Source: Orbicella franksi
Lineage: Eukaryota
Direction: 5' to 3'
Length of the DNA: 64,000 nucleotides
Assembly: GCA_964199315.1 (NCBI GenBank)
Contig: OZ116707.1
Location: forward strand, 5,456,001-5,520,000
Shown: in pieces, positions 2,931 through 30,684 of the stretch
How the letters are laid out: every line of letters begins with the position of its first letter
Position numbering within the stretch: position 1 is the first letter of the stretch
Made by a program: the position numbers and the translations under genes
The notes under the pieces: generated by a model
The model's input: the letters and a program-made list of their open reading frames with translations, nothing else
What the model was told of the DNA's origin: nothing
The model's database searches: none

Positions 2931-3801
2931 CGAATAGCTAGATTAGTCAGGATACTATAATCTATCATAAATATCTATGAAAAAATCTCTCATTATCCAC
3001 ACAAGCTACTGTTACACTTGGTTACTTCTTGATTTCTACAAAAATTAATAATAATGTGAGGTAATATACTGGAATAAAATAAAATGCAAATCCATCCACT
3101 TCAATGCCTTCCTGTTTTAGGAGGCAGTAGAGTGGCAAGGTGGCACTCCCAATGTGGGAGTACCCCCTCCCTTGTCCATGATGTTATGGCAAAGCTCATT
3201 TCATTGCTTATATTTTTCCTCATTAACATATGACATTGTACAAGACATCATGCTAGACACAAATTGATGACAAACATTTTCAGGCCTTGTGAACATCTAG
3301 TTTTTGTAATAATTGAGTTTTTTGAACTTAGGTAGGCACAAAAATAATTCATTAACATTGGGGTAAAATTCCCTGGGACAGTTAATTGTGTTATGCTCTT
3401 TCAATACTCAGAACTGATACTTTTGTAGCTCTATCAAAACCTTATTGCTTATATTAATGAGGCAAATATTGTTAACAAATATTCTCCATATTCTCCCTCA
3501 CAGCTTTGCGAATCTAAATAATATCCACCACCGCTCTATCTAACTTACCAATTGCATCAAACTTCGAAAAACTTGCTGCACGTGCAGGCACTCGAGCAGG
3601 ATTTTGGCTGGGGGGGTGACGGGCGTATTGATACACCCGATCATGGCGGGTTTCAACGACCCTCATCGGCGGTCATTTGGGCACCTACAGAAAAACAACC
3701 CAGAACAACAAAACGAAACCACCAAAACCAAACCACTTAAGCCAGCAAAACAACCAAAACGAAGCCAACACAACGAGAAAGATCTGGAGTTAGTCATACA
3801 G

Positions 3802-4526
3802 CTTACTAGGGTCAATTGACAAAATGAACCCGTTTTTCCATCGTATGAAAAATAACTGTAAAATCGGGATGTAGATTAGGTGTTCTATAGTGAGTTATAT
3901 GGCTTACTAGGGTCAATTCACAAAATGAACCCCGTTTTTCTATCGTTTGAAAAATAACTGTAAAATCGGGATGTAGATTAGGTGTTCTATAGTGAGTTAT
4001 ATGGCTTACTAGGGTCAATTCACAAAATGAACCCTGTTTTTCTATCATTTGAAAATAACTGTAAAATTGGGAGGTAGATTAGGTGTTCTATAGTGAGTTA
4101 TATAGCTTACTAGGGTCCATTCACAGAATAAACCCCGTTTTTCCGTCGTTTCTAAAATAACTGTAAAATCGGGATGTAGATTGGGTGTTCTAGTGTGTTA
4201 TATAGCTTACTAGGTTCAATTCACAAATAAACGCCGTTTTCCCGTCATTTCTAAAGTAACTGTAAAATCGGGATGTAGATTGGGTGTTCTATAGTGTGTT
4301 ACATAGCTTACTAGGGTCAATTCACAGAATAAACCCCGTTTTTCCATCATTTCTAAAATAACTGTAAAATCGGAATGCAGATTGGGCGTTCTATAGTGTG
4401 TTATATAGCTTACTAGGTTCAATTCACAAAATGAACCCTGTTTTTCCATCGTTTCTAAAATAACTGTAAAATCGGGATGTAGATTGGGTGTTCTATAGTG
4501 TGTTATATAGCTTACTAGGGTCAATT
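3802..4526. repeat. Tandem repeat, ~101-bp unit, ~7 copies
   Basis: Unit start CTTACTAGG(G/T)TC(A/C)ATT at 3802, 3903, 4005, 4106, 4206, 4307, 4409, 4511. Whole units are conserved, with no unique spacers. Confidence 0.95.
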
Positions 4527-5794
4527 ATTTAGTTCTAATTCTACTTTTCCCAGAGTTCTAAAGTGAGTTATACCCATCAGTTGGTTGTTCTGAAACATTT
4601 ACTAAAGAGTTCCTAGAGTTGCAATTGCCGTTTCTTGTTCATAGTCAACAAACACATACCCACGTTTCATTGAGCTTCCTTTAACTAGTCTTTTTAAGAA
4701 CATTTTACTGTTTTTATAGTCTATTCATTTTCAAATGATAAACGCCTGATTAGCACAGTTAAATTTCCTAGGTTTAAATTAATTTGATAGAGCGGTCTTC
4801 ATTCAACTGTGATATGGTTGCTAAACAATTAGACATGTTTAGAGCAATTTCAGAGCTTCAACCCAAAACCAAAGTAATTACTTTGGCCAGTCACATAGAA
4901 TTTTGACCATCCAGTAAACCAAACACGCAGCAGATCCAATTTGGAGAGAACGTGCACGCGGGAGTCGCGATTTGTTTTGGGTTTTCCTCGTACTGGATTT
5001 CAAACCAATCGATGAGCACTCCCTGCCCCGCCTCCATAGTAATGCAGACTTGAAGCAATTCACCAATAACTTTTGGCGGTCAAACGAAAACCACTCTTTT
5101 CACGAAGGCCATCATTTGTTTGTTTCTTATTATAATTTGACTATTTTACAAATTAATAAAAATTTTATTTAACTCTCCCAATTGGGGCTTTTCAGTGTTA
5201 ATGAACTACGTACAATAACATACAATACGAAAAGATACAACAGATTAAAACCAAAAAATCAAAATATTACTGAGACGATGAAAGTTCATATAACTTATAA
5301 CTTATTTCAAGAATGACTATGGTAAAGAGATTTTTAGACATTGTTTCATGTTGCTATAAAAAATAGCTCTTAGAATAGCTCTGAGAAACACTAATTTGTG
5401 CAAAATTAAATTTAATTGCTTCGTAAACTGAGAACTGTCCTTTTTCATTTTTTGAAAACAATCTACAAAAAAACGGCAATACGAAAAAGCTCTATGTGAT
5501 ATTCATTACAGGACAACTTGTACTTGGTGCAGTCCTCGTGTGGAAATCTAAGTACTTATGGAGTTAAAGTCCTTGAATGCTTAAACGTAGGTACACTCTA
5601 TTAACTTAGGTAACTCGTCTTCCGAGTGCCTTCGACACTTACTATGGTATAACTTACATAGCTGTCTATTGTAGAAATACATATATTTATATGAATAACT
5701 GACATTTTACTGACAGACACAACATAATGACAAAGTCCACCATTTTTCTGTGAATAAATTGAATTCCTTGCTTTATGGTTGGCAAGTTTTGCTA

Positions 5795-6380
5795 CTAAAA
5801 GGTTACAAATACCAAATTTCCATAAGTGTTATCCTGATTGCCTTCTAATTCCTAAACAGCGTTGCAAAAAGAATTGAGCTCTTTTTCCCCAGCTGTGACT
5901 ACGACAGCACCACTTGGCTCGTGGCAATGAGTATCAATATAGGTTATGATGCCTTCGGTAAAATAGAACAAAGAAGTTTTCTTGTTGAGTATAAGAAATG
6001 CAACGAACGAAGAACGAGAAACAAATGCTTCTTGTAACTGACCACCAACGGTAGATAAAACATGATGTTCTTTCAACCGTACAGGTAAATTGATGCCTAC
6101 ATCCATATCAAACCACATCTCTAGTATGCTAGCAGCTTCTTGTATCGAAAGATACCTTGATGGCAAACTGTCACGACGCAGATCGTAAATGCGATTGCCA
6201 ATTTCTATACAACCGCGTAATACTTAAAGAAAAATGCTCGAGATACTAGAGTTGCAATCTGGAGGAGCAGTGTTCTGGAGACTTAGGGCATACCCAGCGA
6301 GTATACTCATTAAGCTGCATGCTTTGCTTCCGTTCCTGCCTTTGTAGAGGCCTTGACTTATTTCCTTTGGAAATTTCCAA
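5795..6380 (-). other. Putative papain-like cysteine protease domain (peptidase C76/herpes tegument USP-like) at C-terminus of the KDZ transposase
   Basis: KFPKEISQGLYKGRNGSKAC (Cys codon 6319-6317) ... GNRIYD..YLSIQEA ... YIDTHCH (Asp 5935, His 5929). Same frame across the premature TAA at 6226; lies in the last KDZ exon after an acidic linker. Confidence 0.6.
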
Positions 6381-9139
6381 CAGGTAACGCCAGGAGCTAT
6401 AACCTCTGGGGGAACTGCACGTACTAGAGGTGCACTTAAGCTGCTAAGTGCATCCAGGATAGTGTTTGCAGATCCCTTTCCTATCAAGTCGCAGTAGCCA
6501 CCGCTGATCAACTCAGTGTCTTCTTCATTTTCATCTCCTTCGCCTTTCAAGCTTTCGACATCACCATCTTCTACTTCTACATCATGCGTGAGGAGGAACT
6601 GACGAAATGCATCCAGATCTTCAGTCAGCACTGGAGTGAAGGCACTTATCCTGGCAACGATTTGCTTTATGGCAAAATTCTTGCCATCCTGGATTAGGGC
6701 TAGTTTTGCCATTATCACCTGCTTCTGGATCGAACAGGTTGTATACCGGAGACTCTACATGTTTGTTAGAAACAAAAACCAACTGTAAGTCACCTACTAA
6801 ACATGATACAGTACCAAGACCTTGTACGATTTCAAAAATAGTACTATTACGGAAAACATTGATTTAACCACTACAAAAGAACTTGGCACTTGGCACGGTT
6901 AGTAGGAAAGCCTTGTAGACCAAGTGGGTCATACACTGCACTTTGACCGTCTGTTATCTCAACCAACAAAAGACTTACTGAAATTTCTTCAGAAGATGCT
7001 TCCGAGTAAGTTCCTAGTCCTCTGACTTCATTTTCTTTCTGTACATCTGGAGTGAAGAAAGCAAAGTTAACTCAGTTGAAAGGGACAACACATAACAAGT
7101 TCTGTTTTGTTGGATCACTTGAAGCATAACAAAGCATATAGTGAGCTATGTGGACTGGCGTCCGTGTTTTTGTGCATCTGTCTGTCTGTATTATGCAATA
7201 CATAAATGGATGGATGGACGCACGGACAGATACATGAATAACAGTAAGAAACTTTATTTATGAGTCAAAAGTGTTCAGTATCTGTAAAAAAGGTAAATGT
7301 GAGATAACTGGGCAGTACTCAGTTTGCATTGGCGGGTTGGGCTACTGAAACCTGATGTGTAAGTGTTTTTAAAAAAGATATATTCGGAATATAGAAGTTA
7401 CTAAAGGTTAGCATACGTCACACTATAATGCTATTATTTTAGTTTTGAAAGCTAACGATCCAGATACCTTTCAATAAAATCTGCAGTTGCTCCTGTTGTT
7501 TGACCAAGGATGGTAAAACAGTGTTTTTGTAAATGCCATGAATCCAATCATCTCCTTCTGAAGAAGTTTTATTTCTTCCTGAAACCTGGAGGCTTCCATG
7601 TGTTTGTCTACCACCAATCGCTTCGTACGGATAGGTACAACTGTGAAAAACGTAGATAAAAATAAGTATTAATAACAAATTAAATTGTTTCGATCATGAT
7701 TAACTTTAATGTGCTTTTTGGAACATTCTGCTCATACCTTCAACAGTATGAAGTTCAGCTTTCCAGGGAAATTTGCCATTCTCTATCTCCTCTAATTTGG
7801 CAGAGCCATCAGAAGAAAGTCGGTTGTACTTAACAAGTAAGTCTTGTAGGTTTGCTTTCTCCACCGTTATTTTTGCACATAGCTTTTAACGCTGTTTTGA
7901 TCCGTCTAAAGAAATAAAAATATAGAGAAATTTACAGACTAGAAAAAGAAAGAAAGAGAAGGGCCTGTCAAAGGTGGTTTACCGACAGTTAGGTGTAAGC
8001 ATATTAAATTTTGTTCTTTGGCACGCTTAGGTAAAATTACAAAGAAATCACCTGCAAGTTTTCCCATATTGACTGCCAACTGAGCAATTGAATGGTGAAA
8101 ATGCTCCATTTGCCTTTCGAAATACAATAGCGCCTTTTCCACTAATACCGCTTCACCTTCATCAAAGTTGGTACAACGTTTTGGTTGAAGGTCGCTGAAC
8201 TTCTTCCCATACATTAGCTCAGCAGTCTCGCAGAGTAACTTCTGTTTAGAAGTGCAGTCTTGCAGTGTCAACAAGTGACTCAGATATAGCTCTTCATCTT
8301 TGGACAGTTGTGGCTTTTTGTTGTATAAAGCTTCATCATCTGAATTTATGTATGAAAACAAATCAAAACTAAAAAGACAAACACACACCAAAAAAAACAG
8401 ATAAAGAAACTTAAACACAACATTTCGTTATAGCTAAGTGGACAACGCCATTACATCATGCATCAGAGAAAAGCAAGGGGATGATTACACTGGCATATGT
8501 GAGAAAAAGTTGGGGCACAATTGTAACAGATAATTTCACTACATGTGGGTTTCAAGTGCCAAACATGACTTCAAAATACCTAACCTTTTGCAACCAGACG
8601 AACATCTGATTTCCAACTTTCAAAACACACATCTGTTTCCTTCAGACCAACACTTTGATACAGCTCTTTAATTTCCTGAGCCAGCGGCTTAAGATGATTT
8701 TGGGCCTGGGAACAGAGAGGTATGAAGCAGACACATTGATTTCAAACTGTGTTATCAAGGAATGATTAGCAATAAATAATCCACCCTAACTATCACAGCA
8801 CTGAAAGACAAAAGCTGTCATTTATACCTTTGTATATCGTTTTGTAAGTGAATGAGGAAGTCTTTCAAATTTTCTCCTGTTCCAATGAATAGAATGTTCT
8901 TCGTATAGTGTGATCGTCCGGGTGAGTGTAGTTCTAAAAAGAACTGTTGTTGGTGACTGACATTTCTACAACCTGAGCGGAAGTCATCTTCAGATTCAAG
9001 TGAATAGTGTTTGTCAGTCGATGATCTTATAATTCTGGTCCGTTAAACGTGATTGGTCAGTATAGCCATGATGGTATTGGCTGAAAGACTCGTGTAAAGT
9101 TTGTCATCAGTCAAATTAAATTACGCTACGAACAGGAAC

Positions 9140-9652
9140 CCTACGCCTGTTACTACAGTGACTATACCTTAAATTAAGGGCACTTCTGAGACCATCTCGC
9201 AGATCCTACAGCCCTACAACATTTGTGTAGCCCACAAACCTACAACTACGTTACGACACTTACTGACCAACGTGAAAGACAGAGATGAACCTAACGACAG
9301 ACAGGGAGCAGTTTACAAGATCAAATGCTCCAACTGCCAGGCTTCCTACATTGGTGAGACTGGCAGAAACCTTAACACGAGACTGACTGAACACAAACAA
9401 GCCACGAGAAATGGTGATGCCAACAATCACATTGCTGTACATCATCAACTGACAAACCACAACATTGACTGGGACTCTGCTCAGTGCTTAACCTACAGTA
9501 CAAACTATTTTCAACGACTGACTCTGGAAAGCTGGTACACTAACCTAGAACAAACACCTCTTAACAGATGTCAACAACTACTGGCGCCTTACAAACGACT
9601 TATCCACGACAGAAACGAAACCGACAAACAGACTTCTAACAGACCGACTTAA
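9140..9652 (+). pseudogene. Penelope GIY-YIG endonuclease fragment
   Basis: GAVYKIKCSNCQASYIGETGRNLNTRLTEH...HHQLTNHNIDW...RLTLESW; preceded in frame by TIP*IKGTSETISQILQPYNICVAHKP. Confidence 0.9.
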
Positions 9653-9827
9653 CAATACACGGACCAAAACCGACCTAATTGACTAACAATAGACGGATTG
9701 AAACCCACCAATGACTGATGACAAACTTTACACAAGTCTTTCAGCAAATACCATCATGGCTATACTGACCAATCACGTTCAACGGACCAGACTTATAAGA
9801 TCATCGACTGACAAACACTATTCACTT

Positions 9828-9870
9828 GACTCTGAAGATGACTTCCAATCAGGTTGTCGAAACGTCAGGT
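9828..9870 (+). ncRNA. Minimal hammerhead-ribozyme-like motif in Penelope pLTR
   Basis: gact-CTGAAGA-(stem/loop)-CGAAAC-GTC-ag; a second variant copy is on the minus strand at ~8953-8997 (CTGAAGA...AGAAATGTCagtc). PLE pLTRs are known to carry minimal hammerheads. Confidence 0.5.
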
Positions 9871-12386
9871 ACTCCTGGGTACCTGGGTTCAAACCATTTA
9901 CTGAATAGAATGTTCAGTAAGTAGTTCTTCTCTACCTATCGGGTTGTCAAGTAATAGAAAGAAAAATGAAAACATAAACACTTTAATCTAATACTTTAGA
10001 TTACTATATTATAAAAAAAATTATGAAGATATCTGAATCTAACATGGCTGGTTGGTGCTTCACATGGGGCATAGCTTTCAGTTGCCTTTGTTATTTTGTT
10101 AGATGCATGACAATAAGAGTGCTGTACCTTCAGGGAGCATATGCTTTGTACAGGAGCCTAATCTCGAGAAGTGGCTGTTGATATGCTCAACTTCTTCCCC
10201 AGTAGTTGCAGCTGCCTCATTCTGCCACCTACCACCCCACAAGACCTGAGTGGAAACATATACAGTGTACAGTAAACACACGCATGTAAGAACACTGATT
10301 TCAGGTTGTCAACTGATTATCTTTTTATTTATGGGATGCTTAGTGAAAACCAGCCTGAAAGTGTTCTTAAAATTGGTTTCAGAAACACTTCAGGAGGTTT
10401 ACTTGTTGCATACACTGAAAAAAAATCAATAAATACAAACAGATAAATACAAGTATTGCATGTATTTCATCCAGTATGCACTAAAATTCATTACTTAAAT
10501 TAGCTGAGAGGAAAGGGAGACCCAACTGATAAATAACACTTCACCGTACTGTGATGATAAATTCCTTTAAGATTGTTGAAATGTCAGTCTTAACAACAGA
10601 ACCCTTCAAAGGACTACTCTAATCCAAACAATCAGACTTCACAACCAACTGTATTGTTTCCTTATTGTAAAACCTTTTCCTTTATACCGGAACATGTTTT
10701 ACTTATCGAGCTGAATTTGACCTTATCTATACAGTAGCTTATTGGCAAAATTTCAGCATGATGTTCTCAGTCCGCTTGTTCTTATGAGAAGGTTCAACTC
10801 AATCTAACAGGTTTGCCTCTTATATGTACATATATAAAACATTTCTAAGTACATGGATTTAAAGCCTTTTCAATTAAAATTGTATTTACACGACAGTTTC
10901 CAAATGCACAAGAGTCAACAATATCATTGCAGATGCATATAACTATAAGTACAGTACTGCTCAAAAGTAAGTTACCACCTCTCGTCTCATTTCTCGTGAG
11001 ATGAGTCTCGTTTCTCTCGAGACGTTTCTTGTTTCTCGCGAGAATCACTGAAGTGTTTAGTATGGCTTATATTACGCGTAAGAAACCGGTTACAAGTAAC
11101 GATTGCCGCTCTGCAGTTCGTTGTCAAATCGATGGGACCGTCCAACATAAAATATGCATTGATCATTTGCTCGATTCATATCGAACAAAGGTAATATCGA
11201 ACATCGAACTTAACTACAAGTAGAGTTACATGCGTTTCAATTCGTGCAATCATGGGGGCAAAGAGTCGATTTTGCGAATCTTGCTCACTCTGAATGATTT
11301 AAGTTACCTACATTTGCTCGCTCTGCAATAACCGCTAATTCAAACAAACATTTAATTTTGCCTAGGAGAAAAACGTTCCGGCTTTCAGCATGCGCCAGCG
11401 AGTCAATTGTGAATGGGAGTCATGAAAGCGTCACGGAAATTGTTGAAAAAATGATATCTCCGGTTCTGTTTGGTATAAATCGTTCATTCAAACGCTGAAA
11501 TACTATATCTTTGAAGACAGGAGTTTTTATTGAGGTTTCTGAGATGTGCCGTTTACATTACATGTAGTTTTAAATTTTTCTGCCAATGCGAGTTTTGTCT
11601 AGCGGCACGCGTCGACAAGTCAACAACATAATGAACTTTTATTGTTCTCCGAAACATCAAGGCAAACACTAAAAATATATTTCCAGTTCTATTTGGCATA
11701 AATCGTTTATTCAAACGGCAAAATACAATATCTTTGAATACAGGAGTTTCCAATAATGTTTATGTGATGCGACGTTTACATTAACTCAATGTTTTTGCAA
11801 GGGAAAGTTCTGTCTAGCAGCAGTCGATTTAATACGCAAATGAAGTTTGTTTCGCAAAGCATTGCGGCAAAAACATCACCGGTTCTATTTGATATAAATT
11901 GTTTTTTTCCAATGGCACAATACACTCTCTTTAACAGATAGAATTTTTGTTGCTCGACAACGAAGATCTCGAGCAGTATGTAAATAAACATTTTATATAT
12001 CGGTCGATACAGCAGTCTAGGCCTGCCATAAGATACATGATCCAACTTCTGAACACTGAAACGCACTTTTATTACCACATTTGCACATAACTATTATTAA
12101 CATTGGCCAGCTAGTCTAAGAGTTGTGATCTTTTCTAAATTACATTCATGACAACGGAAACTTTTCTCTTCAAACGGCAATACTGTACTTGAGCACGCTT
12201 AAATCCACGAAACTATGTTGTTGTCTCTCAATCTTTCTTATATGAACTTGAACAGGTGAGAATCTCCAATTTTAAGACTGATGAATCCATTTTTTCACAA
12301 ACTGATCGTTAGGGTTCAATCTAAGGAAGCGGATTTTAGCGCACTCAAACATATGAATTAATTACTGTAACATTAAAAATAGATAT

Positions 12387-15211
12387 TTAATCTCGTCGTT
12401 CCTGGCCATCACGCTTTTTCCTTTGCAAAAATTTGTCGAAAGCAATAACACATTTCCTCCACACTAAGTCCTCTTGTACTGGGGTACATGGATACAGTTT
12501 TAGAACATACTTTTTTACAATATCTATTTTCGCAGCATTCAGCTGCCCCTTTCCCCGAGTCCCAGTACAGTTACGGTTAATTAACTCCTCCGGCTTAAAG
12601 ATAATGCTTAAAAACTTACCGGTGAAATTTCCCACACGACAACTTGAATGCTTCAAAAGTAATGCCTCCCCCATAAATATTTTATCCTCCTCCCCCAACG
12701 ACTGTTCCCGTGAAACATTACCAATTTCCTTATCACCCTCTTCCAAAGCGCTTGCCCGTTCCATAACATTTGAAATGTCCCCTAAAATGCGATTTCCTCC
12801 ACTTCCCCGTGAAACAACATTTTCCGTGGATCCCTGACCAAACCTTCCCATAACATTTGAAATATCCTGCAAACAGAAGTACCTGACATTCATCCTATCA
12901 AAATCAGTAAAATAGAACTATAAGAAAAAAAGGACCGGGAAGCTTCTCTAAAAGTGAACATTTCAAATTTTGTTAACAAGGTTGTTGACTTTGAAAACTT
13001 CAGGTTATACCACATGTAACCGCTGTCGCAAAACATTTGCAATCTCAATAGAAGATACAATATATACATTTCATTGCGGATCTTAGTGGAGTGATACCAA
13101 ACCGTCCAAGCATTGACATCTCAATTTGCTTAATTATCAATGTTTACTTTGTCAAGTTACCTCGTTGCCGGCATCCTTCTCCCCACTCACATTGTTGTTA
13201 GTGTTACACAATGCAGGTAGCACGGTTTCGGACTGTTCTTTCTCCGGCTCTACAGGTGCTACCATCAGAAGTACCTGACATTCATCCTATCAAACCCAAT
13301 AAAATAGAAATATAAGAAAACAAAAATGACCGGGAAGCTACTCTAAATCTGTGTTATTCGCGAATAGTTACATTGTTAACTTCAAAACTCTTCGGGCTAT
13401 GCTATGCTATCTCCCTAGAAAATGTTGACTCTAAAAACCATTGAAATTTCAAGTTACCTTCTTTCCTCCATTTTTCTTTTTCCCAGTATCCTTCTTCCCA
13501 GCCCCTCTCTTCATCATATTCACATCCTTTTCCTGAAGTGAAGAAATAAAGTATTGTTGACCTGGCATTACATACAGGTAAAAACTTATTCTGTGATGTC
13601 AATTAGTAGTTGACATGAATTGCTTGTAACTTCATCATTCCAATTACCTTACTATCTATTGCTTTTGGCCCACTAAAAAATAATTCTGTTGGCCTCCTAA
13701 TGCTCCTGTGGTAAAAATCAATATCTCTTCGCCCCAAAACTACGAAACCAGTCCTTACTGTATAGGCAGTAATTTAAGGCAAAATTTATATGACCGGTGT
13801 TACCAAGTGCAAGCGAACGCGACTAGAAGCTGCATTAGTTAATAATCAGAACTACATGTAACATAAGTTCAAAATAAAAAAAAAAGCAAAAAATTCACAA
13901 AAGTTAACTTCTGTGTGGAGCGCAGTAACTTTTGTATGGAGCGAAGTGACTTTTTTATCGAGTCTAAATGTATTTAATTTATTGCGCGTGTAGTTGCACA
14001 AGACTTCTTTTAATGGAGACTGTATTGTTTTTTTGCCACACATACCCACGCGTAAAGTGTGAACTTATGTTAATTCAAGGTGAGGCTTTTTTTTCGGCAC
14101 AACGCTTCAACCTTTCAAAGACTTGTTCATTTGAAAATTCGGACCTCAACTATTTGTGTTATCTTAAAAGATTCTACATTGTCGAGCTCAATCGAATTGA
14201 TTTCGATTTCCTAACGTTCGATTGACTATGACCGGTGTTACCAAGTGCGACCGAACGCAACTAGAAGCTGGATTATTTAATAATCAGAACTACATGTAAC
14301 ATAAGTTCAAAATAACAAAAAGCAAAACATTCACAGCAAAGTTAACTTCTGCGTGGAGCGCAGTAACTTTTGTATGGAGCGAAGTGACTTCGATTATGGA
14401 GTGAACTGACTTTTGGTTGGGGCGAAGTGACCGTAATTCGTTACGCTGGTAACAATCATTACTTAAACCAACGTTAAAACCTGAATGTTCTAATTACCCA
14501 AATGACTATTACGTTACAATCATAGTAACCAACGTTCTGCGCGCTCGAAAACCCTGAACATTCTAATTACGCTACAAGCATCATATCAGAAGGACAGATC
14601 TCGACTTACCTTACGTGGCTTCTTTCTCAGTTGTGCCTGGTTTTCCTTATCGTCGCCTCTAAGGTACTCCTGAGAAAAGGCCAGATCCTTCTTGTGCAAG
14701 ACTTGATAATGATCTACCAAGGAAAATCAAGCGGTTACAAAAATTTAGTTGATTATCAACTTGTACTTGATAAAGGTAAATTTTACTGCTGTAACGAATT
14801 TGATGAAAAGCTGGCGTTTTCAACTTGTCCGCCAACACAGCACCTGAGTTTCTTTAGTCACTAATCACTTTGTTGGTTACAAAAGTTGCCGTGAGTTCAA
14901 CGACATTTCACGAAGGTGAGTTGATAAGCTTACAAAAAGTTAACGCAATTATTACATCTGTACTTACCACTTAATGCAACTATTTTAGCGGGAACATGCT
15001 CCCCCTGCCAGTTAATGGTGACGTCCACGCCAACTGCAGCTGCTCTCTTTTCCAAAATCAAGAGTGTAGGAGTAATGCCAGTCTTACCCTCTTCGGGGAA
15101 AAAACAGTGCCTTTGAAGGTAATTGTGTCTCGCGACATAATTTTCTGGCAGCCATTTTCTTGTTAGTGTTTTTCTCTTAACAATGCACATGACGATTGTC
15201 AGAGTAATCAA
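12387..15211 (-). pseudogene. Multi-exon BEN-domain protein gene (cargo of the Tc1-like element)
   Basis: Last exon 12866-12387 encodes IFKPEELINRNCTG.RGKGQLNAAKIDIVKKYV...YP...WRKCVIAFDKFLQR (BEN-like pattern). Candidate upstream exons 15211-14968 and 14713-14610 have GTAAGT donors; the second contains a stop/frameshift. Confidence 0.65.
13789..14400. repeat. Direct repeat of ~170 bp (about 13789-13955 and 14227-14390)
   Basis: TATGACCGGTGTTACCAAGTGC...GGAGCGCAGTAACTTTTGTATGGAGCGAAGTGACTT occurs twice. Confidence 0.8.
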
Positions 15212-15487
15212 ATTACTATGGTGTTTTTAAAAACGCAGGGGTGCTTTTATAGTGTGTGTAACAAGTCCTTTGTTTAAAAACGGATCCAAATTCCTTGTCA
15301 TTGATTGGCTACTGAGTATTTAAATTTTTCATTGTTAATGGTGGATCCAAATTTCCTGATGCTCATTGGCTTTTTAAAATGTATTGAAATTTTATTGATA
15401 CCTAACTGGCTAGTTATGTTTTTCTTGTTAAAATGTATTGAATGACAGTTGCATCTCACTCAACAGTAAGAGCATTCCTTTCAATCA

Positions 15488-16163
15488 CGGGTTGCTTGAC
15501 AAATAAACAAAAAGCAAAAATTGTCAGGCTTCGAGAACAAAATAGAAATATTAGTCAAATTGTGAAAATTCTTGGCGATGATGACTGCCAAATAAGTCAT
15601 CTCAGTGTGAGGTGCTTTTTAGAACGTTTCCAAGAAAGGCAGTCATTTTCGAATGCCCCTCTACCAGGTCGTCTAAATGAAAATGTCACGCCAGAAGTAT
15701 TGAACTTTATTGATGCTGAAATGGAGAAGAATGACGAACTCACAGCACCAAAGCTTGGCAAAAAGCTCCAGGAACAGTTCGGCGTCAACTTCTCTGAGAG
15801 CAAGGTGAAGAGGCTGAGGGAGAAGCTTGAGTGGGTTCAGACTGGCACGAAATACTGCCAGCTGATACACGAGACGAACCGCGCCAAACGACTGGAGTTC
15901 TGTCTGAAGTGTGTGGAAGACAACGAGCAGTTCGATGATGTCATCTTCACAGATGAATGTTCTGTTCATATGGAAAAGCACACCAAGCTATGCTTCCGTC
16001 GCAGGTGGGAGCAGCCGAAGCTGAAAGGATGAGCCAAGCATCCTTTCAAAGTACACATCTGGGCGAGTATCTCGAAAAGAGGACCGACTAGAGTGGGAAC
16101 ATGGATGCGACGTTTTATGTCAACGAAATCTTGGAAAATTCCCTTCTGCCCTTCACCCAGAAT
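15488..16163 (+). pseudogene. Tc1-family transposase, internally deleted and C-terminally truncated
   Basis: HTH N-terminus (KQKAKIVRLREQNRNISQIVK), KRLEFC...DDVIFTDEC, stop at 16030-32, then KHPFKVHIWASISKRG and MDATFYVNEILENSLLPF. The DDxE C-terminal half is missing. Confidence 0.85.
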
Positions 16164-16306
16164 TTAAAGTTTATTTCAAAAAGTTGAAGCGCATATTGTT
16201 GACATTCGCAATTACGGTCGCATCCCTAGCAACACATGATAAGTTTTCATTTGGAGTACCTAGAAGAAACGTTTGCCTGTAAACTGTGAATAAAAAATCA
16301 GTCGAG

Positions 16307-17095
16307 TTTTCATGATCAAAGCATGGTTTAGCATGTTTACGAGTATGAATAAAAAGTTAGTCGAGGTTTCATGATCAAAGCGTAGTTTAGCATTTTTATG
16401 AGTATGAATAAAAAGTTAGTCGAGGTTTCATGATCAAAGCGTGGTTTAACATGTTTACGAGTATGAATAAAAAGTTAGTCGAGGTTTCATGATCAAAGAG
16501 TGGTTTAACATGTTTACGAGTATGAATAAAAAGTTAGTCAAGGTTTCGTGATCAAAGTGTGGTTTAGCATGTTAACGAGTATGAATAAAAAGTTAGTCAA
16601 GGTTTCATTATCAAAGCGTGGTTTAGCATGTTCACGAGTATGAATAAAATGGTAATGGAGGTTTCATGTTCAAAGTGTGGTCTAGCATGTTCACAAGTTT
16701 GAAAAAATGGCAATTGAGGTTTCATGATTAAAGCGTGGTGTTGCATGTTCACAAGTTTGAATAAAATGTTAGAGGTTTGACGTGGCAAAAAGCGTGTGAA
16801 CACAAATGTGGATAAAAAGTTGGTCGAGGCTCAGTGATTAAAGTGTGTGTTCAAAAGGTAGTCGAGATTCCTTATGTTTACAAAGCGTGTGTTCTCAAGC
16901 GTACACAAGTATGAATAAAAAGTTAGTCAACTCGGATTTCATGTGCAAAGCGAGCGTTCACAAGTTTGAATAAATTAGTTATTCGTATGTAAAGTGAAGT
17001 GAAGTGTGATCAAAGCGTGGCGTGCTCACAACTTTTGAATAAAAAGTTCGAGGCTTATGTGCAAAGTGTGTGTTTGCAAGTTTGAATATTAAATT
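16307..17095. repeat. Minisatellite, ~59-bp unit, ~8 good copies then degenerate
   Basis: Unit TTTCATGATCAAAGCGTGGTTTAGCATGTTTACGAGTATGAATAAAAAGTTAGTCGAGG repeated in tandem, decaying rightwards. Confidence 0.9.
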
Positions 17096-20000
17096 ATTTT
17101 ACAGAACACTTAGCGTCGTTTCGTATGTTCGCAATCTTTGGATAAAAAGTTCGTCGAGTTTCCCGACAAATCAGTTGGGAGCAATAGTTGGCAAAACAGG
17201 TTGCACTGCTGTATTGACATAGTGATCGCAATCGCAGCTTCAACTTCCAACACGTAGATCAGGTGACAAAATTCCACGTTTCATGAACACTACATTTTGA
17301 TTATCAACTGTATGAATCACGTTTAGGGTTGCGAACAAACTTTTTTTTTAAGATCTATACAAACAAGAGAATTAATACAACTGTAAAACATATTTGTAAA
17401 CACGAGTGACTAACTTGCCACCGATTCACATACCTTCGACTTTTATCGTGCATGTATTTACAAAAACTAAACGTCAAGCAAGTCTGGCTGTAATGCAAAA
17501 AGGTTTGGCCGATGTTTATGAAACAATACGGGACGCTTGAGAATTTATAATACACACATGGTACACACGCATTGCTGATGAGAATGAAAATCGTGTCTAC
17601 CGTGCTAATCGATACGATACAGACGTCTTATTAACAAAACAGGTTTCGAATACCGACAAATGCATAGCATTGGTACTTCCAGTGCACTCGCGAGAAACAA
17701 GACTTATCTCATTTCTCTCGAGACTCATCTCGTTTCTCTCGAGACGAGTCTCGCGAGAAACGAGATGCGTCTCGCGAGACGGTGGTAACTTACTTTTGAG
17801 CGGTACTGTACCTGACATGACCAAGCATGAGCTTTTGTATGCATCACTGACAATGCTGGTTTCATTTTCTGGGCAGTTCCTGGGTCATTCTTTTTTAGCC
17901 AAGGCCAGTATTTACAAATGACATTGTACCAAAAAAAATCAATTTTTTGGGAATATAGTAGTTGACTTGAAGATAGTGTGCATAGCCATAAGCCTCCCTA
18001 TACATCATGTTGATGGCATGCTGTGCCAATCCGTGCCTGCATCCTGATATCTCCAGGCCTGTCTCAGACAGATTTCTCCTCTTCTTTATTGTGTTTCTTG
18101 CTGCACACCAGTTTGATTCACCACACTTTGCATGCTCATCTGTTTTCTAAATTGAAATTCACATAAGCTTCAAATTTATTAAATATCAGACTAGATTTTT
18201 TTGGAGTCTGATAGAGTATGTCACATTGAATCAAACTAAACCTAAGTTATAAAAAATAAACACCTAGACATCTACACGATACTTATAAAGTGCCTTTCAC
18301 TGTTGCTACCAAAACATTTCAATAATGCATCCAGAAAATAGTCCATCAGTACAATTATTGTAGACTCCATTTAAATTATAATATTATGGCTTATTTAAAT
18401 ATTCAAGTGCAGGCAATGGCAGCACTTCCAGCCAGTGTTGTAAACATTAAGAATGTAAATGAATCATTAAAAACACATTTAAAGTAAATTTAGACTGATA
18501 ACTACTTATACTGTAAAGGGGACAGTGCAGACATTAAATAGGCTACATTAGATATACAATTGCTTTCCACAGGTGAGCACTGAAATCATTCTAGGATACT
18601 CTATTGAAAGGGCCATTAAATCCACACAAACCCAGACACCTACATGTGTCTAACATTACATGAAAATGTTGTAGTTAAAAATTAAATTCAGGTAAAAATT
18701 AAATTCCTTTGTCTTTTAACCCTTATTAGGGTTAGAAGACAAAGGAAATTGAGAATCAAACTAGGTTAAAATCACTTTAACCTGAATTTAATTTTTAACT
18801 ACAACAAACATGCTTTTTCACTAGTACTGTATTTGTACAAGTACTGTCTGTCTTTCTGATAAAATAGCTATAGCATGGTACCACACTGCAATATTATCTA
18901 CAGCATGCCAATTATTTTGGAGTAATTGGGAATCTAGTATCATACATTTTAAGTTGGCTTCTTTGAAATGTGTACAGGCAGAATGATACATGTTTAATAG
19001 AGCTCTTACCCTTTGCTTAACACCTTGATAGACCTCATGTATATGGTTGTCAACTTTCTCATTTGAAACGACAAATGCCTCTCCGTAGTAACAGTCTTTT
19101 TTTCTTCTAAATAAAGGTGTCATAAAAAATAATATTACAACTATTAATTATTGTTATAATAATTACTTAGCCAAAGAAAATAGTTGCCAATTGGTGCTTA
19201 ATGAAAGCACTGTTCACTGACCTTTATGTTAAAAAAAATATGAATCAAAAATAAACATTCTTTGTTATTGGGGCAAAATTAATTACAAAACTTACATTCC
19301 AGCAGATTTAAATCTGTAGAGTTTCATGTTGCCATCAACATGCACAGAATGTTGGTGATCACTACATGATGGGCATTCCATCCGGTCAATCTGTCGTAAT
19401 TTGTCTAGTTCAAATTGACAGTACTTCCATTCTTTAAAGGATGTTCCAAATGTTGTGGCATTAATTGTTGCGACCTGGAAAGAATATTCAAGCTATCATG
19501 TTATGAAATGTCACAACCTCTTTAGTTATGATCTCTATGCAATCCACAAATGTTATCTTTCAAACAACAGGTAAGAAAAAGAAAATGAGTTTTTAATCAT
19601 CAAGTTTTTTTTTCCTTGTGTCAACAACAAAGCTTTTAACTAAATGATCATTTAGTGCAAGCCCACTTTTAAGAGAGAATTAATATTTGTTGGTATGTTG
19701 AGAGCTTCTTAATTAAAAGCAAATGTAGGAATCTTAAAATACATCTGGCACTCAGGACTGCAGAAATAGACATCACCAAGCTGAACTGCTGTCCTCAGAT
19801 CCCACTAGGAGGCAGAACAAAGAAAACCTTTTAAACACTGGCTAACAGCCTGTCAGCAATAACATTACTACATAGTGCAGCCCGAATATAAAGTTCACTT
19901 TGCTGGTATTAACAATAAGCTATTAAATTGTTGCAGCATTATACACCATATACAACCTATCAGCAACATACAAGAACTAATTAACAACCACATTTCTAAT

Positions 20001-22086
20001 GACTGATAGTCTTCAATCTTGGTACTCACACGTCCTTTTCTCTTTGAAAAGAGTTCAAGTGACTTGAGAAATGAGTGCTCAGACACTCCAGGAATCTGCT
20101 TCTGAAGAAGATCCCAGTAAAGGAAAAGGTCTTGATTAAAGACATATGTCATATCTCTGATACTTCCTGGCCAAAACCCTGACTGTGTTACAACCACTGG
20201 TTCAGAAGTGCAAATGAGTTTATTACATTTGAGACATTGATATCTCTGGTGATTTATGTCAAACCGTCCTGAAATTTGACATACAAGTGTGTAATTAGGT
20301 AAGAAGGACAAACTGATTGTAACATCTGAAGAAGCCAATAACAGGCTTGATTAAAATTTAGAAAATGCAGCAAAAAATTAAATGCTAATATGTTACAGAA
20401 ATAGAATATGTTTAGGTTTTTTTACAGGAAGTAAATTCATACAAGCCTATTACTACCTTGAAGAGTAACAATGATGCAGTGACTTTCTGTCAAAATTTCT
20501 TGAGGTTTGCAAAGGCCATTGCAGATCATACAATGAAGCTCTGAAATTGGCAGACTTCTCACTGATAAAGAACAAAATAAATTAAGGTAAGCATTTTACA
20601 AATGCTAAATGATTCCTCTGCTATGCTGAAATACAAAACATAAATAAATAAAAATTAAGACAACTTAGGCAAGGACACTGCTAAGATTTTACACTATTTG
20701 TTAATAAATTTAAACAACCAAAAAAAATGATGTCAATGTTTGTAAACAGGAAGTGTAAAAAGATTTATAATTTATATTTTGTGTTGTTTCTTTATGCTAA
20801 TATATGTTTATGGTTTACATGTGACAAAATTACTATTCTAAGTAGACTTTCACTGCCATTTTAAATAGATAACACACACATAAATGTAACCAAATAAAAG
20901 ATTAATTACCTACTATTTCCCATTCGCCATTACTGCCCAATGATGTTGTAACAGGGATGGGCAAATACTGCCCATTAACTATGGCATTTCTGTCATGAAA
21001 TGGCCTTGTTCCATGAACAGTCTTATCGCAACCCTGACACAGATGTCTTGCACTGGAACACATGTCACATTTCACCACTGCAGCTTTAACCATACACCTG
21101 TTGCACAAAACATCCTCAGGAACAACAAAAGTGGACTGCAATAGGGCTTTGAAAAGATATGACCGATGCTCTTCCCAGCTTTCATTTAAAGCAGCCTGCC
21201 TTTCTGACCATTTCTGCCTCCTGGGTGGGTCACTTTCTTGCAATCTTGCCAGAAGTTCTTGCGATTCTAACAATATATCTTTCATTTCTCCTTTAAAAAA
21301 AAAACATTGAGAGTAAAAACAACAGTAACAATTTTTTTAACAATACATTTATTATTAGTATTCTTATGTAATATGCAATCACTACAATGTAACAGCGGTT
21401 CTAATATCATTGATTTAAGGCAACATGACCTTCACACCATGATTTGATTGTGAAGGCTAAAGCTATGATATTATGGGTTTTCTAGGCTGGAGTCTTCGAT
21501 ATGAATAATGTCAACGTTAAAATTGCTCCAAAAAAGCCCTAAGCTCTATTCAAAAAGATAATAGTTGCAACAAGGAACAAACCACTCATTGAATTGGATG
21601 AACACGTCGATGAATGTAAACTTTCACTTTCACAACAGCTCATGCCATCTGGAATGTCTGCATGAAGAAGAAAAGAGAGCTCATGAATCAAGAGCCAAGC
21701 AGAAATGTCTTTAAAGTACTAATAGATAGTCACTGATTGCAAAGCAAGAAGCTGCAACTGTACCATCACTTTCGAAACCAGGAGTCTCCGGAGCAAAACT
21801 GATCTCTTTTCGTCTTTTCTTGGGTTGCCCTTGGTATGTTCCTTTGTTATTGCGGAGTCCGTTAACAGGATCTCTCCCATATTCATAGTGGTGATCTTTG
21901 CGTCCTTTCTTCTTCGTCAAACCCAGCAATTCTTTTCCTCTGTCAAGTAGCTCAGCCATTGAGGGAAGCTTCCGTTTTCGATGACTCATTTTTAGGATAA
22001 TTTAAACTTAATAAATAATTGATTTAAAAGAGTTCGCAAGCAGCTTCCACCACTAAAAGCCTCCAAAGCCATTGCAATTTACCGAT

Positions 22087-26126: not shown

Positions 26127-26602
26127 GCAACACTTTTTTTACCTTTTTGTAAATTAGATCAAAAAACTCAACTAAGAAAAATGTTACATGATATCTCTGA
26201 ACACAACATATCATATTTACAAAGTTTGCTGTTTGTCATTGTTGAGTTGCAAAATACATATCACAGACGTAGTAACGCAAGAGGTACAACTACAAGAGCA
26301 GAATATGAACGAAGGTTTGTTCGGCTAATAACTACAACAGTAAAACATTTCCAGGAAAATCAACAAATGAACGAGAATCTGAAATTTGCAATGCTATGAA
26401 GCCGAGTTATTTGTTATTTGACCTTGATAAATATTCCCCATGTTCAAATAAATCAGTGTACAGGAACTGTTGAGTTCACTTTAGTTTACCTTAATTTTAC
26501 TCAGGAAAAAACGCGAGGAATATAACTCAATCCTAAAAACATAACATTACAAAAAGAGGAATAAGATGCCTTCTATCCTGTGAGTGTGGTGATACACTCC
26601 AT

Positions 26603-27602
26603 TTATAAATAGATGTTTACATTTGAGTTCTCGTATTGATCTATAATCATCAGAAGTCTCCAGTCTTCGTCTTCACACCAGTCAGGAACCTTTTTGAGCG
26701 CTCTTTGCAAAATTATCAGATCCCTATCCAACCAGCTTCTGTTCACATACTTTACTTGGTTTTGTGCCTTCAATCTAGGTCTCATAACAAAGAAAAACGA
26801 AGATTTGCACGTTCACGTGCAGCCATGAAACTTTTGAGATGGGTTTCCTCTTCTTGTGCCTTGTTTTCCAGAGATCTAATCTCATGCTGAAGTTGGCTAA
26901 TTTTCGTTTTGTGTTTGGGATGCTTTTCTATTATTTTACACACACTGAGTTCCACGCAAGGAGGTTTTGAGCATTTTACTTTTGTGTGACCACTGCAATG
27001 ACAGTTGTTACAGAGTCGAGCTCGGATATCACTGAGCGACTGAAAATGTCCGAATTCACTGTTCAGTTTCTCCAATTCTTCTTTTGCGCTAGCAACTTGT
27101 ACTTTCAAAACCTTAAGATTTTCTTCCATTTCCCGTCACTGGCAGTCCACACGACTTTTCTCAGCATTTTTTGGAGCTGTCATAGTTGCGAGATGTGTGC
27201 CAGGCGTTGGTGTGAAAGACAGATGCTTCGGTTGCAGCGACTTGAATTCGTTAGAAGCTGAAGAACTCGGCAGTTCCACGTCCATTCGTCTCAGTTTTCT
27301 CGGCAGCGGCAAATCTACTTCGCTTGCCTGAAGAAAAATCTTTCCGTAGTCCCGATCCTTGACTTCTTTTGCACTCCTTAGCATCTCACCAAAAGCAAAA
27401 TCATCTGGATCTTCCGACAGATTGATCATATCGCCGTCTTCGTCGTGATATCTTACACGAATGTTTGAAGCGGGTAAGTGTGCAAGCGGTGAACAGTTTT
27501 GCTTTATCGCCTGCATAAACGTAGCAAAGGAGATATCCTTGATCAAGAAAGTACTAAATCTTTCCTCCCCGTACTTCACCTTCACCTGGTACATTGCCAT
27601 GT
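26603..27602 (-). pseudogene. ORF2: PB1 domain + Cys/His zinc-binding cluster + coiled coil
   Basis: MYQVKVKYGE...IRVRYHDEDGDMINL (PB1 acidic OPCA motif); in-frame TGA at 27138-36; CNNCHCSGHTKVKCSKPPC..VC...KH; 1-nt frameshift ~26805 into MRPRLKAQNQVKY..RSWLDRDL. Confidence 0.75.
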
Positions 27603-30094
27603 TCTTTGTAATGGATATCATGCTGGGAGATCTACTCCGCCTTACAAGATTATCTGCTCCCTGATTGGTCAGTTGCCGATTACCAAGCATCAAACACATC
27701 AAAAATATGTCAAAAAATGTAAAAAAACTGTCTGGGTGTTCACGGTACCGCGCGCAGCACTGTAATGAACTGTATTTCACTCCAGAATGTTAATGTTATT
27801 TTTTTCACTTTTTTGGCCTAAGTGTACCCCTACAAGTATAAAGCTTAGATGTTTTCATGCAGTGACTTCTTTCAAGGATTAATATTGCTCCCCTGGCCAT
27901 TTACCAGTAGTTTTAAGACTAATTTTGAAGATTCATTTGATAATTATAATCAAGAGATAATAATGATATTTGTCTCTATTACAACACCTTCAGTGCTCAT
28001 CAATGACTTTTATCAATTTCGAATCTGAACAACTGGGCCTGAAAGTTCAGATATTTGTACATAGCTCCTTTTTTGTTTATTTTTTTGTAACTTCCAGACT
28101 TGCTGTTAGTGATCCACCTCTTAAAGCAGTACACTTTTATTGTCATGATATCGTGATACTGTTGATATTCAAAAGTATTTTATTATAATTTTTTTTATTT
28201 TAAGCAAAAGAACATGATAGCTGCCTTATACAGCTCAAGAACAAGTGGCTCAAAGAGGCTCACACTGGATGGAACCCTTTTTGGATGGCAGACAATTGAG
28301 AAGATCTACAGCCAAGAGATGGAAAGAGCAGAGGGGGGACAAAGCCGCAAAGTCCCTGGTCTGAAATATGCATTTGTGTACCAAGACAACTGGACGCATC
28401 TCAATGTTGGACCAGCCAAGATCATGCAGGTAACAAACTTATTTAACCCAAAATGTTTTACATTAGAAAATAATTTCATTGCTTCAAAAGTCTGCAGCAG
28501 ATATTTTTGGATCAACTAATGATGTTTCCTTTTTTAGTAGTGGCTGTTTTATCATGATATGAGAAAGTTCTGAAAGTTGCATTTGCTAAGTTCAAATTGC
28601 TAAATATTTGGTCTGTTTGTTATTATTTTTATTATAGCAACGTTACATGATTTCTGCAATCGATGAGCTGAGCAAAGAACTGAATCAGGGGAGTGCCAAG
28701 CATGTCGTCAGTTTCCTAGAAGCTTGCAATCTCATTTTTGAAAAGGGACTGCTTAGTAAACGGAGAATAAAAAGCATGGAGAGCTCTGTCATTCAAAATA
28801 TCAAGAAAGGAATGGACTTCTTTGAGAAATGGAGCCACATTCATGATGAGACAGGTATGTTTAATACAAGTAATCATATCTTACGTACTGTGTACAGTTT
28901 GGAATGAGATGTCTGATGATATTTTATTTTCTCTTGGGATTCTGTCATTGTAAATGAAGTACTAAAGAACAAAATGTCAATCCCATATTTCTGTTTTAAG
29001 GGATTATGGTAATATTTTGTTCTTGTTCAGTAAGTAAACAACATAGAGGACAACAAATTTACTTTCTGCTTTTTTTTATGAAGTCATTAATTCCTTTTTA
29101 CCAATTTGCATCGGATAATAGCATTTTGAAATGAAGTGTAATATGCAATCTTCATAAGGATCTTTGTGTTACTTCTAGCAGTGGGAGGGGGTCTTTGACC
29201 CTTAAGTATGATTGGTTTATTTATTTAATTGCCCTGCAGTTTATATTCTATTACACAATATTAGTGAGTGTCACAATGTTTTGTCATCAAATTAAAAATA
29301 AATTATTTTGTCCTCAGAATACCCTGACAATACTAAGAAGTCTAGGCAGAAAACGTTTCTTGCATGGCAGGTTAGTTACTAATGTTTGAAATAGTAAAAA
29401 AATGATTTTGGGTCAGTTGGCAATGTTTTATTTCTCGATAGAAGTAGCTAGTGCACAAAGTTTTTATTAATAACCTGGAATAATCCCTGTCTTCTTAACA
29501 GTCTTGCTATCACTTGTTAACTTGAAAATTGATGAATTCTTACCTCAGTCTTGATAACAACAACCCTAAACAGGCAGTGCAACAGTAACTGTCACTTGCA
29601 TGCAATCATGGACAAATAACTGATATTGCTATGGATTACATTGACATATGATCCTGAATCTTGATTTCAATTATGTAATGTCACTGAAGATGCATTATGC
29701 CATTTCGCTGTATCTTATTCTATACTGAACTGTCACTATTTTTTTTTCATAGACATGGGATCTTCTTCGAGTTGTTGTGCATGGTTTTCTATCATTCTGT
29801 GAATGGTTCTTTACCAGTGTGTCACCAGATGGAAGATATTTCATCACTCCATTGTAAATCAATGGCAGTGCTTTGGAATCCATTTTTAGTGTTCTAAAGC
29901 ACACAAGAGGGGGGAATTTGTCTGCCATTGCTTACCCTCCAGCATTGGGAAGACTCATTAGCAGGAAGAGTTTAGCTCAAAACAATAATTCTGAGAAGGA
30001 TTACAGAGACCAAAGTCTGAACCTAGATGGAGGGTTAATTTCAACTCAAGATCAAATTTCCATACCATGTAGCATTGTCTCCAGGGATCTGTGC

Positions 30095-30684
30095 AAATTT
30101 ATTTTTCCTCTTATATCGCACAGTCCTTAATAGGAGGAAGGCAAGGCAGCAATGCCTGCACTATTATTGCTGTTACATTTGGTAATTATTGTATGCAATA
30201 TAAGTTAGATGTTTCATTGCTATGGACACAGTTGCCACAGTCATGGACTTCTTTATTTGTAAAAGCAATATGTGACACCAATGATATGTATGATGAGTTG
30301 TATGGGGATACTGCCATCTATCTTGACGTAGAAGATGTCGCACAGTCTCTAGGTACAGATTGTAATATACAAAGTATAAGTGCAACTGCTGGTTTCTCAA
30401 ATGCGCATAATTTTGCTGATCTAGCTGCACATGTGGGCAATGTTCAACAGCCATCCTATGGGGTTCTTATTGGCTGTGAAAAGTCAGTAGGTATTTTTGT
30501 ACAAACTAATGGTCTGTGTGCATTAATCTATAGTCATGTACACAACAGCAATGGTGCCATCATAATGATGGCAGATACTCCAAGCAGACTAATTAATGCT
30601 TACTCAAGAATGCTACTTGAGCAGAATTTAATTCTTAATCTTTCCACTTTCACATGGGTACAGTACATGTATAATCATTACTAG
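30095..30684 (+). other. Putative papain-like (C76-like) domain, homolog of 5795-6380
   Basis: F(P)SYIAQSLIGGRQGSNAC (Gln 30121, Cys 30157) ... TNDMYD..YLDVEDV ... LIYSHVH..GAIIM (Tyr 30529 in place of Asp, His 30535). Confidence 0.6.

Follow-up and report, generated by a model that had tools for sequence, protein, structure and literature searches.

The 64-kb stretch of Orbicella franksi DNA analyzed here (contig OZ116707.1 of assembly GCA_964199315.1, positions 5,456,001 to 5,520,000; hereafter the window, in whose positions all coordinates are given) raises the question of whether an exon at 5795-6754 ties a protease to the transposase of a KDZ (Kyakuja-Dileera-Zisupton) DNA transposon and, if so, which protease this is. 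A preliminary description of the locus had proposed such a fusion, encoded within one exon, with a protease of a family other than Ulp1. Our analysis indicates that the region 21962-5795 of the minus strand, to which all features of the KDZ gene belong, is very probably a decayed multi-exon gene copy of a KDZ transposon with a VTD-type peptidase as its tail.

The last exon and the gene to which it belongs

The last exon (5795-6754) is preceded by an 'ag' acceptor at 6756-6755 and opens at 6754 with SLRYTTCSIQKQVIMAKLALIQDGKNFAIKQI; a conserved helix (6709-6590), an acidic linker (EDGDVESLKGEGDENEEDTE, 6571-6512) and the VTD peptidase domain (approximately 6388-5798) then follow. The frame comprises 320 codons, is interrupted solely by TAA at 6226-6224 and TAG at 5854-5852, and terminates at TAG 5797-5795; this is the natural stop recognized previously, and intact homologs end alike, sharing the C-terminal ...NLVFVTF with the window frame. 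As had been pointed out, the list of open reading frames (ORFs) presents this single exon as two unrelated entries, 6224-6718 and 5852-6166. With a window G+C content of ~39%, we roughly estimate that a random frame of 319 codons would contain ~20 stops, so that the two found place this open frame far from chance, and the homologs decide the matter anyway. Two copies were compared with the window: L002, the closest one (95% identical), and L001 (GCA_044670265.1, contig JADOBR010009509.1), with 77% DNA identity over the exon blocks only. No indel separates the window from either copy inside the last exon, and at the two stop positions the codons are AAA and TGG in L002, and GAT and TGG in L001; hence, of the codons predicted for other copies (CAA and TGG), only the TGG was encountered. 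The earlier view that point lesions alone break the frame holds for the last exon but not for the whole gene, whose upstream exons have lost single nucleotides at two sites and received a 1-kb insertion.

Upstream of the last exon lies a small exon of 68 nt (6979-7046, phase 1 to 0), which is preceded by 'ag' at 7048-7047 and followed after 6979 by the donor 'gtaagt'. Its two leading bases finish a split codon, after which it reads (D)VQKENEVRGLGTYSEASSEEIS and joins the last exon in frame, i.e., the splicing of 7046-6979 to 6754 proposed before has proper ag/gt borders and was correct in all its coordinates. The preceding exon (7468-7640, borders cag/TTG and AAAG/gtatct) ends in ...QEQLQILLK plus the G of a phase-1 junction, and has suffered a 1-nt deletion near 7531 relative to both L002 and L001. 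When L001 was aligned with the window, exon-sized blocks matched and the intervening sequence, i.e., the introns, did not. L001 keeps the phase-1 donor after ...QEQLQ(I/E)LLK (window 7468), its counterpart of the small exon is in frame with 65 nt and has ag and gtaagt borders, and the tag/AGT acceptor (window 6754) is also kept, with the frame open across both junctions. Thus, the frame of this copy continues past the 6754-type acceptor with both junctions and the phase maintained.

Fusion of the two parts was also found in relatives that are intact. An exhaustive search with the domain profile (274 matches, E up to 1e-3) retrieved P0019 (XP_048586080.1), a Nematostella vectensis protein of 1048 amino acids (aa) listed as 'uncharacterized protein LOC116618382 isoform X3', which has CxC3 at aa 100-209, KDZ at aa 256-469 and the VTD domain at aa 845-1047. 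In tblastn it follows the whole 16-kb gene collinearly (window 21962-5798), and its alignment with the last exon begins at exon codon 2. Nematostella has at least three such loci, on different contigs (17.9-20.8 Mb in length), with 96-99% identity over the whole protein, and its RefSeq entries combine CxC3, KDZ and VTD domains. A word search restricted to long proteins, with the P0019 VTD as query, found those of Nematostella only, although this search needs shared 5-residue words and says little on other taxa. In a more distant element, L006 (VTD 40% identical), CxC3, KDZ, tail and VTD lie in the same order within 5.6 kb, and L005 shows part of this order. Finally, L003 is a 1.8-kb intronless contig with a single ORF, open at the contig 5′ end, that links the transposase tail to the VTD domain and crosses the positions of four window introns.

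Most database homologs, in contrast, are stand-alone proteins of ~300 aa that start near the GTG/ATG at window 6718-6712, which would fit a separate peptidase gene that lies downstream of the KDZ gene and has a promoter and start codon of its own, the fusion then being an artefact of the gene model. We give very little credence to such an arrangement. The ~300-aa proteins stem from short metagenome contigs on which ORFs were called in prokaryote style, and because their start codon is the first one after the in-frame acceptor 'tag' we regard them as artefacts of ORF calling. Likewise, a word search with 6754-6227 returned 11 proteins (59-92% identity), each of them an ORF called on a short contig from a metagenome or a genome, and several metagenome copies have broken tails. 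Moreover, the Met with which a stand-alone protein would begin is not conserved, since L001 has an Ala there (VIAAQLAL), and the coding signal reaches upstream to the acceptor both in the window and in L001. Two points count against the fusion as read in the window: both of its junctions rest on conservation and relatives, and L002 is silent there, with an assembly gap of N over the small exon. The L001 junctions, the Nematostella proteins, the gene order of L006 and the read-through of L003, taken together, nevertheless support the KDZ transposase-protease fusion first proposed for this locus, and with it the assignment of the last exon to the transposase gene.

The remainder of the gene was delimited with pieces between stops and single exons searched separately. 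At the 5′ end an N-terminal basic exon block (21741-21962, approximate bounds) matches P0019 aa 12-87 in tblastn (39% identity, E 1.4e-7). The CxC cluster typical of KDZ proteins is represented by CxC3 (20021-20308; PF18804, E 1.8e-21, 76.5 bits with a cutoff of 26.6), which is 52% identical to P0019 aa 120-215. The KDZ region starts in a zinc-ribbon-like exon block (19298-19492; 85% aa identity to L001 and 68% to P0019 aa 212-271), where the Zn_ribbon_16 match is weak, and continues in a block with approximate bounds 19001-19132 (70% aa identity to L001; P0019 aa 272-299). The KDZ core exon (17803-18146) matches PF18758 in two frames, with a frameshifting 1-nt deletion near 17938 relative to L001, and the end of the Pfam domain lies in the exon 10126-10260 (82% aa identity to L001, 79% to P0019 aa 416-462). 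The three PF18758 pieces, 18146-17931 (profile 51-107, E 7.5e-6, 26.2 bits), 17949-17803 (profile 120-167, E 1e-4, 22.5 bits) and 10260-10126 (profile 164-202, E 0.04, 14 bits), are collinear on the same strand; singly none exceeds the cutoff of 26.6, the exons having been searched apart, and the collinear homolog P0019 scores 100.9 bits on this profile. Downstream, a KDZ exon (8825-9972) that is uninterrupted in L001 is split by an insertion into parts at approximately 9936-9901 and 8911-8825. It is followed by three transposase C-terminal exon blocks with approximate bounds, 8583-8735 (65% aa identity to L001), 8050-8388 (62%; homolog P0014 aa 3-71) and 7730-7906 (63%; P0014 aa 72-122).

From its N- to its C-terminus the protein would thus consist of a basic N-terminus, CxC3, the KDZ core, a long helical region, the conserved helix, the acidic linker and a VTD peptidase of ~200 residues. 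A fusion within one exon, as originally formulated, stands for the transposase C-terminal helix, the linker and the peptidase, but not for the KDZ catalytic core, which is located 4-12 kb upstream in other exons. CxC3 followed by the KDZ domain is the usual order in KDZ transposons (PF18758; CxC clusters PF18802-PF18804), from which the window element differs in ~580 extra residues that end in the VTD peptidase and in its multi-exon gene.

The family of the tail peptidase

The fold of the tail domain was analyzed on an AlphaFold2 model of an intact copy (P0002:95-308), a protein 88-90% identical to the window pieces. The model has a predicted local distance difference test score (pLDDT) of 95.7 and a predicted template modeling score (pTM) of 0.92. 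In a Foldseek search of the PDB the best match was the murine cytomegalovirus M48 tegument deubiquitinase (2j7q, E 3.7e-6, template modeling (TM) score 0.65), followed by the zebrafish Helitron DrT1-VTD (8add, TM 0.64) and the Waddlia Wc-VTD (8adc/8adb, TM 0.49-0.57). More distant neighbours after these VTDs were AvrPphB (1ukf), PaTox, MCF and UfSP2. Herpesvirus large tegument (UL36-type) proteins made up 25 of the 27 top matches in BFVD, a library of viral structures.

The residues of the putative active site agree with this placement. The domain alignment (A3) comprises 45 sequences that share 23-91% identity with the reference; it shows no variation at Gln, Cys and His, and the Asp is conserved in at least 90% of the homologs, the pattern being ...SQ-x11-C... 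and D-S/T-H-x-H. In the window all four are kept on the minus strand between 5927 and 6355, the Gln at 6355-6353, the Cys at 6319-6317, the Asp at 5935-5933 and the His at 5929-5927. When the profile of the 45 sequences was compared with PDB sequences, 8adb_A (E 0.0024) was the sole match below 0.1, and the Cys and Asp-x-His boxes aligned. Erven et al. (2022), who defined the VTD family, consider an 'invariable Asp-x-His' its hallmark (PMC9741609). The window-type domain therefore resembles the VTD family (M48 of murine cytomegalovirus, UL36 of herpes simplex virus, peptidase C76, and the Helitron VTDs) in its papain-type fold, with M48, Wc-VTD and DrT1-VTD as best matches, in the Gln ~12 residues before the catalytic Cys, in the Asp-x-His motif and in being carried by a transposon. 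It differs from the family in that the carrier is a KDZ cut-and-paste transposase and not a Helitron/Helentron RepHel protein, in its low identity to the solved VTDs (12-15%) and in having no Pfam model.

Other families were considered and rejected. Ulp1/SENP (peptidase C48) gave no Pfam match and was absent from the 50 best fold matches, and its His-Asp-Cys order is not the Cys...Asp-x-His order observed here. UfSP/ATG4-type peptidases had been considered for the order Cys...Asp-x-His, which the UfSP (peptidase C78) family also has, but the fold scores reject them (UfSP2 3oqc, E 7e-3, TM 0.40, root mean square deviation 13; UfSP1 2z84, E 0.09). For YopT/AvrPphB (peptidase C58) the structural match is weaker (1ukf, E 2e-4, TM 0.46), and the Asp lies 2 residues before the His, as in VTDs, whereas the catalytic order of the YopT family is Cys...His...Asp. 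The last-exon domain is, as judged from its modeled fold, a VTD-type (peptidase C76-like) papain-fold thiol peptidase; a protease family other than Ulp1, as had been suggested, is what fold, residue order and the lack of a Pfam match all point to.

Several observations weigh against this assignment or against an activity on ubiquitin. No Pfam family, Peptidase_C76 included, matched up to an E of 1 with either piece of the broken exon or with the intact P0002 and P0008, and phmmer searches of PDB sequences, made with one exon piece at a time, yielded no useful match. The window copy also has a Lys in place of the Asn that most homologs have at the second residue ahead of the catalytic Cys. Furthermore, the next structural neighbours, the YopT/AvrPphB-type proteases, are not deubiquitinases, and the cysteine-protease domains of AvrPphB, PaTox and MCF are the nearest folds after the VTDs. 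By analogy with YopT/AvrPphB, the domain might be a processing protease, with either a host protein or the transposase polyprotein as its substrate, the latter being cut, e.g., at its acidic linker. Erven et al. themselves note YopT-type structural neighbours of VTDs and derive the VTDs from a protease family without deubiquitinase activity (PMC9741609). We regard a processing protease as unlikely, given that M48 and DrT1-VTD reach TM scores of 0.60-0.65 (Wc-VTD 0.49-0.57) compared with 0.46 for AvrPphB, that VTD/tegument structures lead the viral library search, and that the residue order is that of VTDs. In addition, all tested VTDs with intact catalytic residues are reported to have cleaved ubiquitin chains (PMC9741609). 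The VTD-type domain of the KDZ element is thus most likely a deubiquitinase, an activity predicted from the model and its relatives.

Selection, decay and mobility of the element

Between L002 and L001 the ratio of nonsynonymous to synonymous substitution rates (dN/dS) is 0.10 in the VTD part and 0.46 in the linker. These sequence comparisons indicate that the VTD domain evolved under purifying selection, and the value of 0.10 argues that the element lineage benefited from it. Gln, Cys, Asp and His remain in the window, but this copy is a dead pseudogene that is unlikely to have a function: it contains two in-frame stops, has lost 1 nt near 17938 and another near 7531, and has received two nested transposon insertions.

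The larger insertion (10949-17811, ~6.9 kb) lies in the large intron, which measures 7.5 kb in the window and 0.46 kb in L001, from which the insertion is absent. It is bounded by inverted arms at 10949-11046 and 17746-17811, whose ends are complementary at 97% over 31 nt and 85% over 34 nt, and it contains a BEN-domain ORF at 12387-12893 on the minus strand (PF10523, E 6e-5). The smaller insertion (8912-9900, ~1 kb), the one that splits the KDZ exon, carries a GIY-YIG ORF on the plus strand (9272-9652; PF01541, E 2e-5) between 157-nt inverted arms (8957-9113 and 9712-9868, 94% complementary), with the 14-bp duplication GAACATTCTATTCA at both junctions; this insertion is possibly a piece of a Penelope-like element.

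Whether the KDZ element itself moved as a transposon is less directly documented. An inverted-repeat search of the window detected neither terminal inverted repeats (TIRs) nor a target-site duplication (TSD) for it, which counts against its reading as a transposon; the sole flanking inverted pair (3294-3328 and 26156-26190, 74% complementary) may be due to chance. For this reason the mobility of the KDZ family is deduced from copy number and decay. That no TIRs or TSDs were found in the window would also fit a domesticated host gene, derived from a KDZ transposon and provided with a deubiquitinase tail, of which the window copy would be a duplicated pseudogene. The strong purifying selection on the VTD, the repeated domestication of VTDs described by Erven et al. 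(PMC9741609) and the listing of the Nematostella copies as ordinary loci in RefSeq point in the same direction. The copies, however, are numerous and often broken (59-95% identity), and in Nematostella three or more loci, each on its own contig, are 96-99% identical throughout. The full CxC3 and KDZ set is kept, and the stops, frameshifts and nested insertions of the window resemble the decay of dead transposon copies. We therefore find a domesticated host gene quite improbable, and prefer to read the locus as a dead copy of a KDZ transposon.

Other features were observed around the gene. Just 3′ of the stop codon ~450 bp of the window (5325-5773) are absent from L002, i.e., there is an indel between the copies, and further downstream the minus strand at 3812-4524 has ORFs of ~35-aa tandem repeats (…LTLVSHITHYRTPNLHPDFTVI…), a minisatellite-like array. 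On the same strand lie an ORF of 214 aa that encodes a PB1 domain (27136-27780; PF00564, E 1.5e-7) and a long one of 462 aa (31398-32786), whose N-terminus is acidic and rich in Ser and which gave no Pfam match.

Carriers of VTD domains and the role of the KDZ tail

Transposon VTDs are known chiefly from Helitrons/Helentrons, and Erven et al., who propose that VTDs spread via transposons, state in one sentence that several Cnidaria have VTDs fused to 'several transposon-associated domains' (PMC9741609). Neither the text nor the examined supplements of that paper mention KDZ, Kyakuja or Zisupton, and no link between KDZ and a deubiquitinase was found in the literature searched. The pairing of KDZ and VTD, intact in sea-anemone genomes, does not seem to have been described before. 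For the Ulp1 protease of Zisupton elements, with which the preliminary description had compared the tail, we found no supporting text in the literature searched; an F-box isoform is reported for the platyfish Zisupton (PMC12062965). Other precedents are the C-terminal ubiquitin/SUMO proteases of Ginger1 (OTU or Ulp1), Mutator-like elements (Ulp1) and Helitrons (OTU) (Bao et al. 2010, PMC2836005). With these the window element shares the union of a DNA transposase and a C-terminal thiol peptidase of the ubiquitin/SUMO system, here in a cnidarian-type element, and it is distinguished from them in that the tail is a VTD (Cys...Asp-x-His) and not a clan CE Ulp1 or an OTU; for this domain there was no Ulp1 or OTU Pfam match, and no such fold was present among the top matches.

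In a tree of the domain the KDZ-linked VTDs fall on one side of a branch with a support of 87/92. This is compatible with a single capture of the VTD by KDZ, and is not proof of it. VTD domains were also observed in other contexts. Five proteins (P0062, P0074, P0088, P0089 and P0110) and the locus L004:3001-5145, of ~700 aa, combine a Serinc (serine incorporator, PF03348) membrane domain at the N-terminus with a VTD at the C-terminus; they form a well supported clade (100/99), and P0089 is encoded by a single unbroken ORF of a 1.1-Mb metagenome contig. The text of the VTD paper (PMC9741609) does not mention Serinc. In P0133 and P0147 the VTD is preceded by weak RING-finger matches, all of them below the Pfam cutoffs; if real, these would unite a ubiquitin ligase-type finger and a deubiquitinase-type domain in one protein. 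At L005:1264-4827 (minus strand), a Helitron-like ORF (Helitron_like_N) and an adjacent OTU-domain ORF lie just upstream of a 5′-truncated KDZ-VTD copy, an arrangement that places two transposon types with ubiquitin-system peptidases side by side.

A further VTD-like domain of the window, divergent from the first, is encoded by an intact ORF of 197 aa on the plus strand (30091-30684); it was detected with the domain profile in hhalign (probability 99.3%, E 2.8e-20). Its Gln, Cys and His are kept, and the Asp of Asp-x-His is a Tyr (IYSHVH). The closest sequences are P0124 and P0153 (32-34% identity), and then the Serinc-linked VTDs. The plus-strand ORFs immediately upstream (28214-30130) gave no Pfam match.

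How the tail might act in active copies can be envisaged by analogy with the known systems. The tethered peptidase would remove ubiquitin or a ubiquitin-like modifier, either from the transposase itself or from chromatin or repair factors at the site of transposition, and this deubiquitination could shield the transposition machinery from degradation or silencing. Such a role was proposed for the VTD and OTU domains of Helitrons (PMC9741609) and suggested for the Ulp1/OTU tails of the Ginger1 and Mutator transposases (PMC2836005); we infer that a tethered deubiquitinase may work likewise in the KDZ element.

With moderate confidence, we put forward a broader picture in which KDZ elements are a second, so far undescribed, animal vehicle of VTDs beside the Helitrons. 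In this picture the domain was captured once, was kept by selection in anthozoan-type elements, and is present in intact and possibly mobile copies in Nematostella; VTDs would also have been recruited to Serinc and RING proteins, as members of a broader unannotated clade without a Pfam model. The KDZ element adds a new class of carrier to a known peptidase family; its intact members are unannotated in RefSeq, and ~270 homologs currently lack a family annotation. The intact Nematostella copies offer a tractable system, i.e., a model animal with full-length genes and a domain model with a pLDDT of 96. The finding is also relevant to where the herpesviral tegument deubiquitinases came from, as a cut-and-paste carrier in cnidarians widens the range of possible vehicles. 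Finally, Mutator, Ginger1, Helitron and now KDZ elements each tie a ubiquitin/SUMO protease to a transposition enzyme, and the KDZ case, with its different peptidase fold, strengthens the idea that DNA transposons may generally need an escape from ubiquitin-dependent control.

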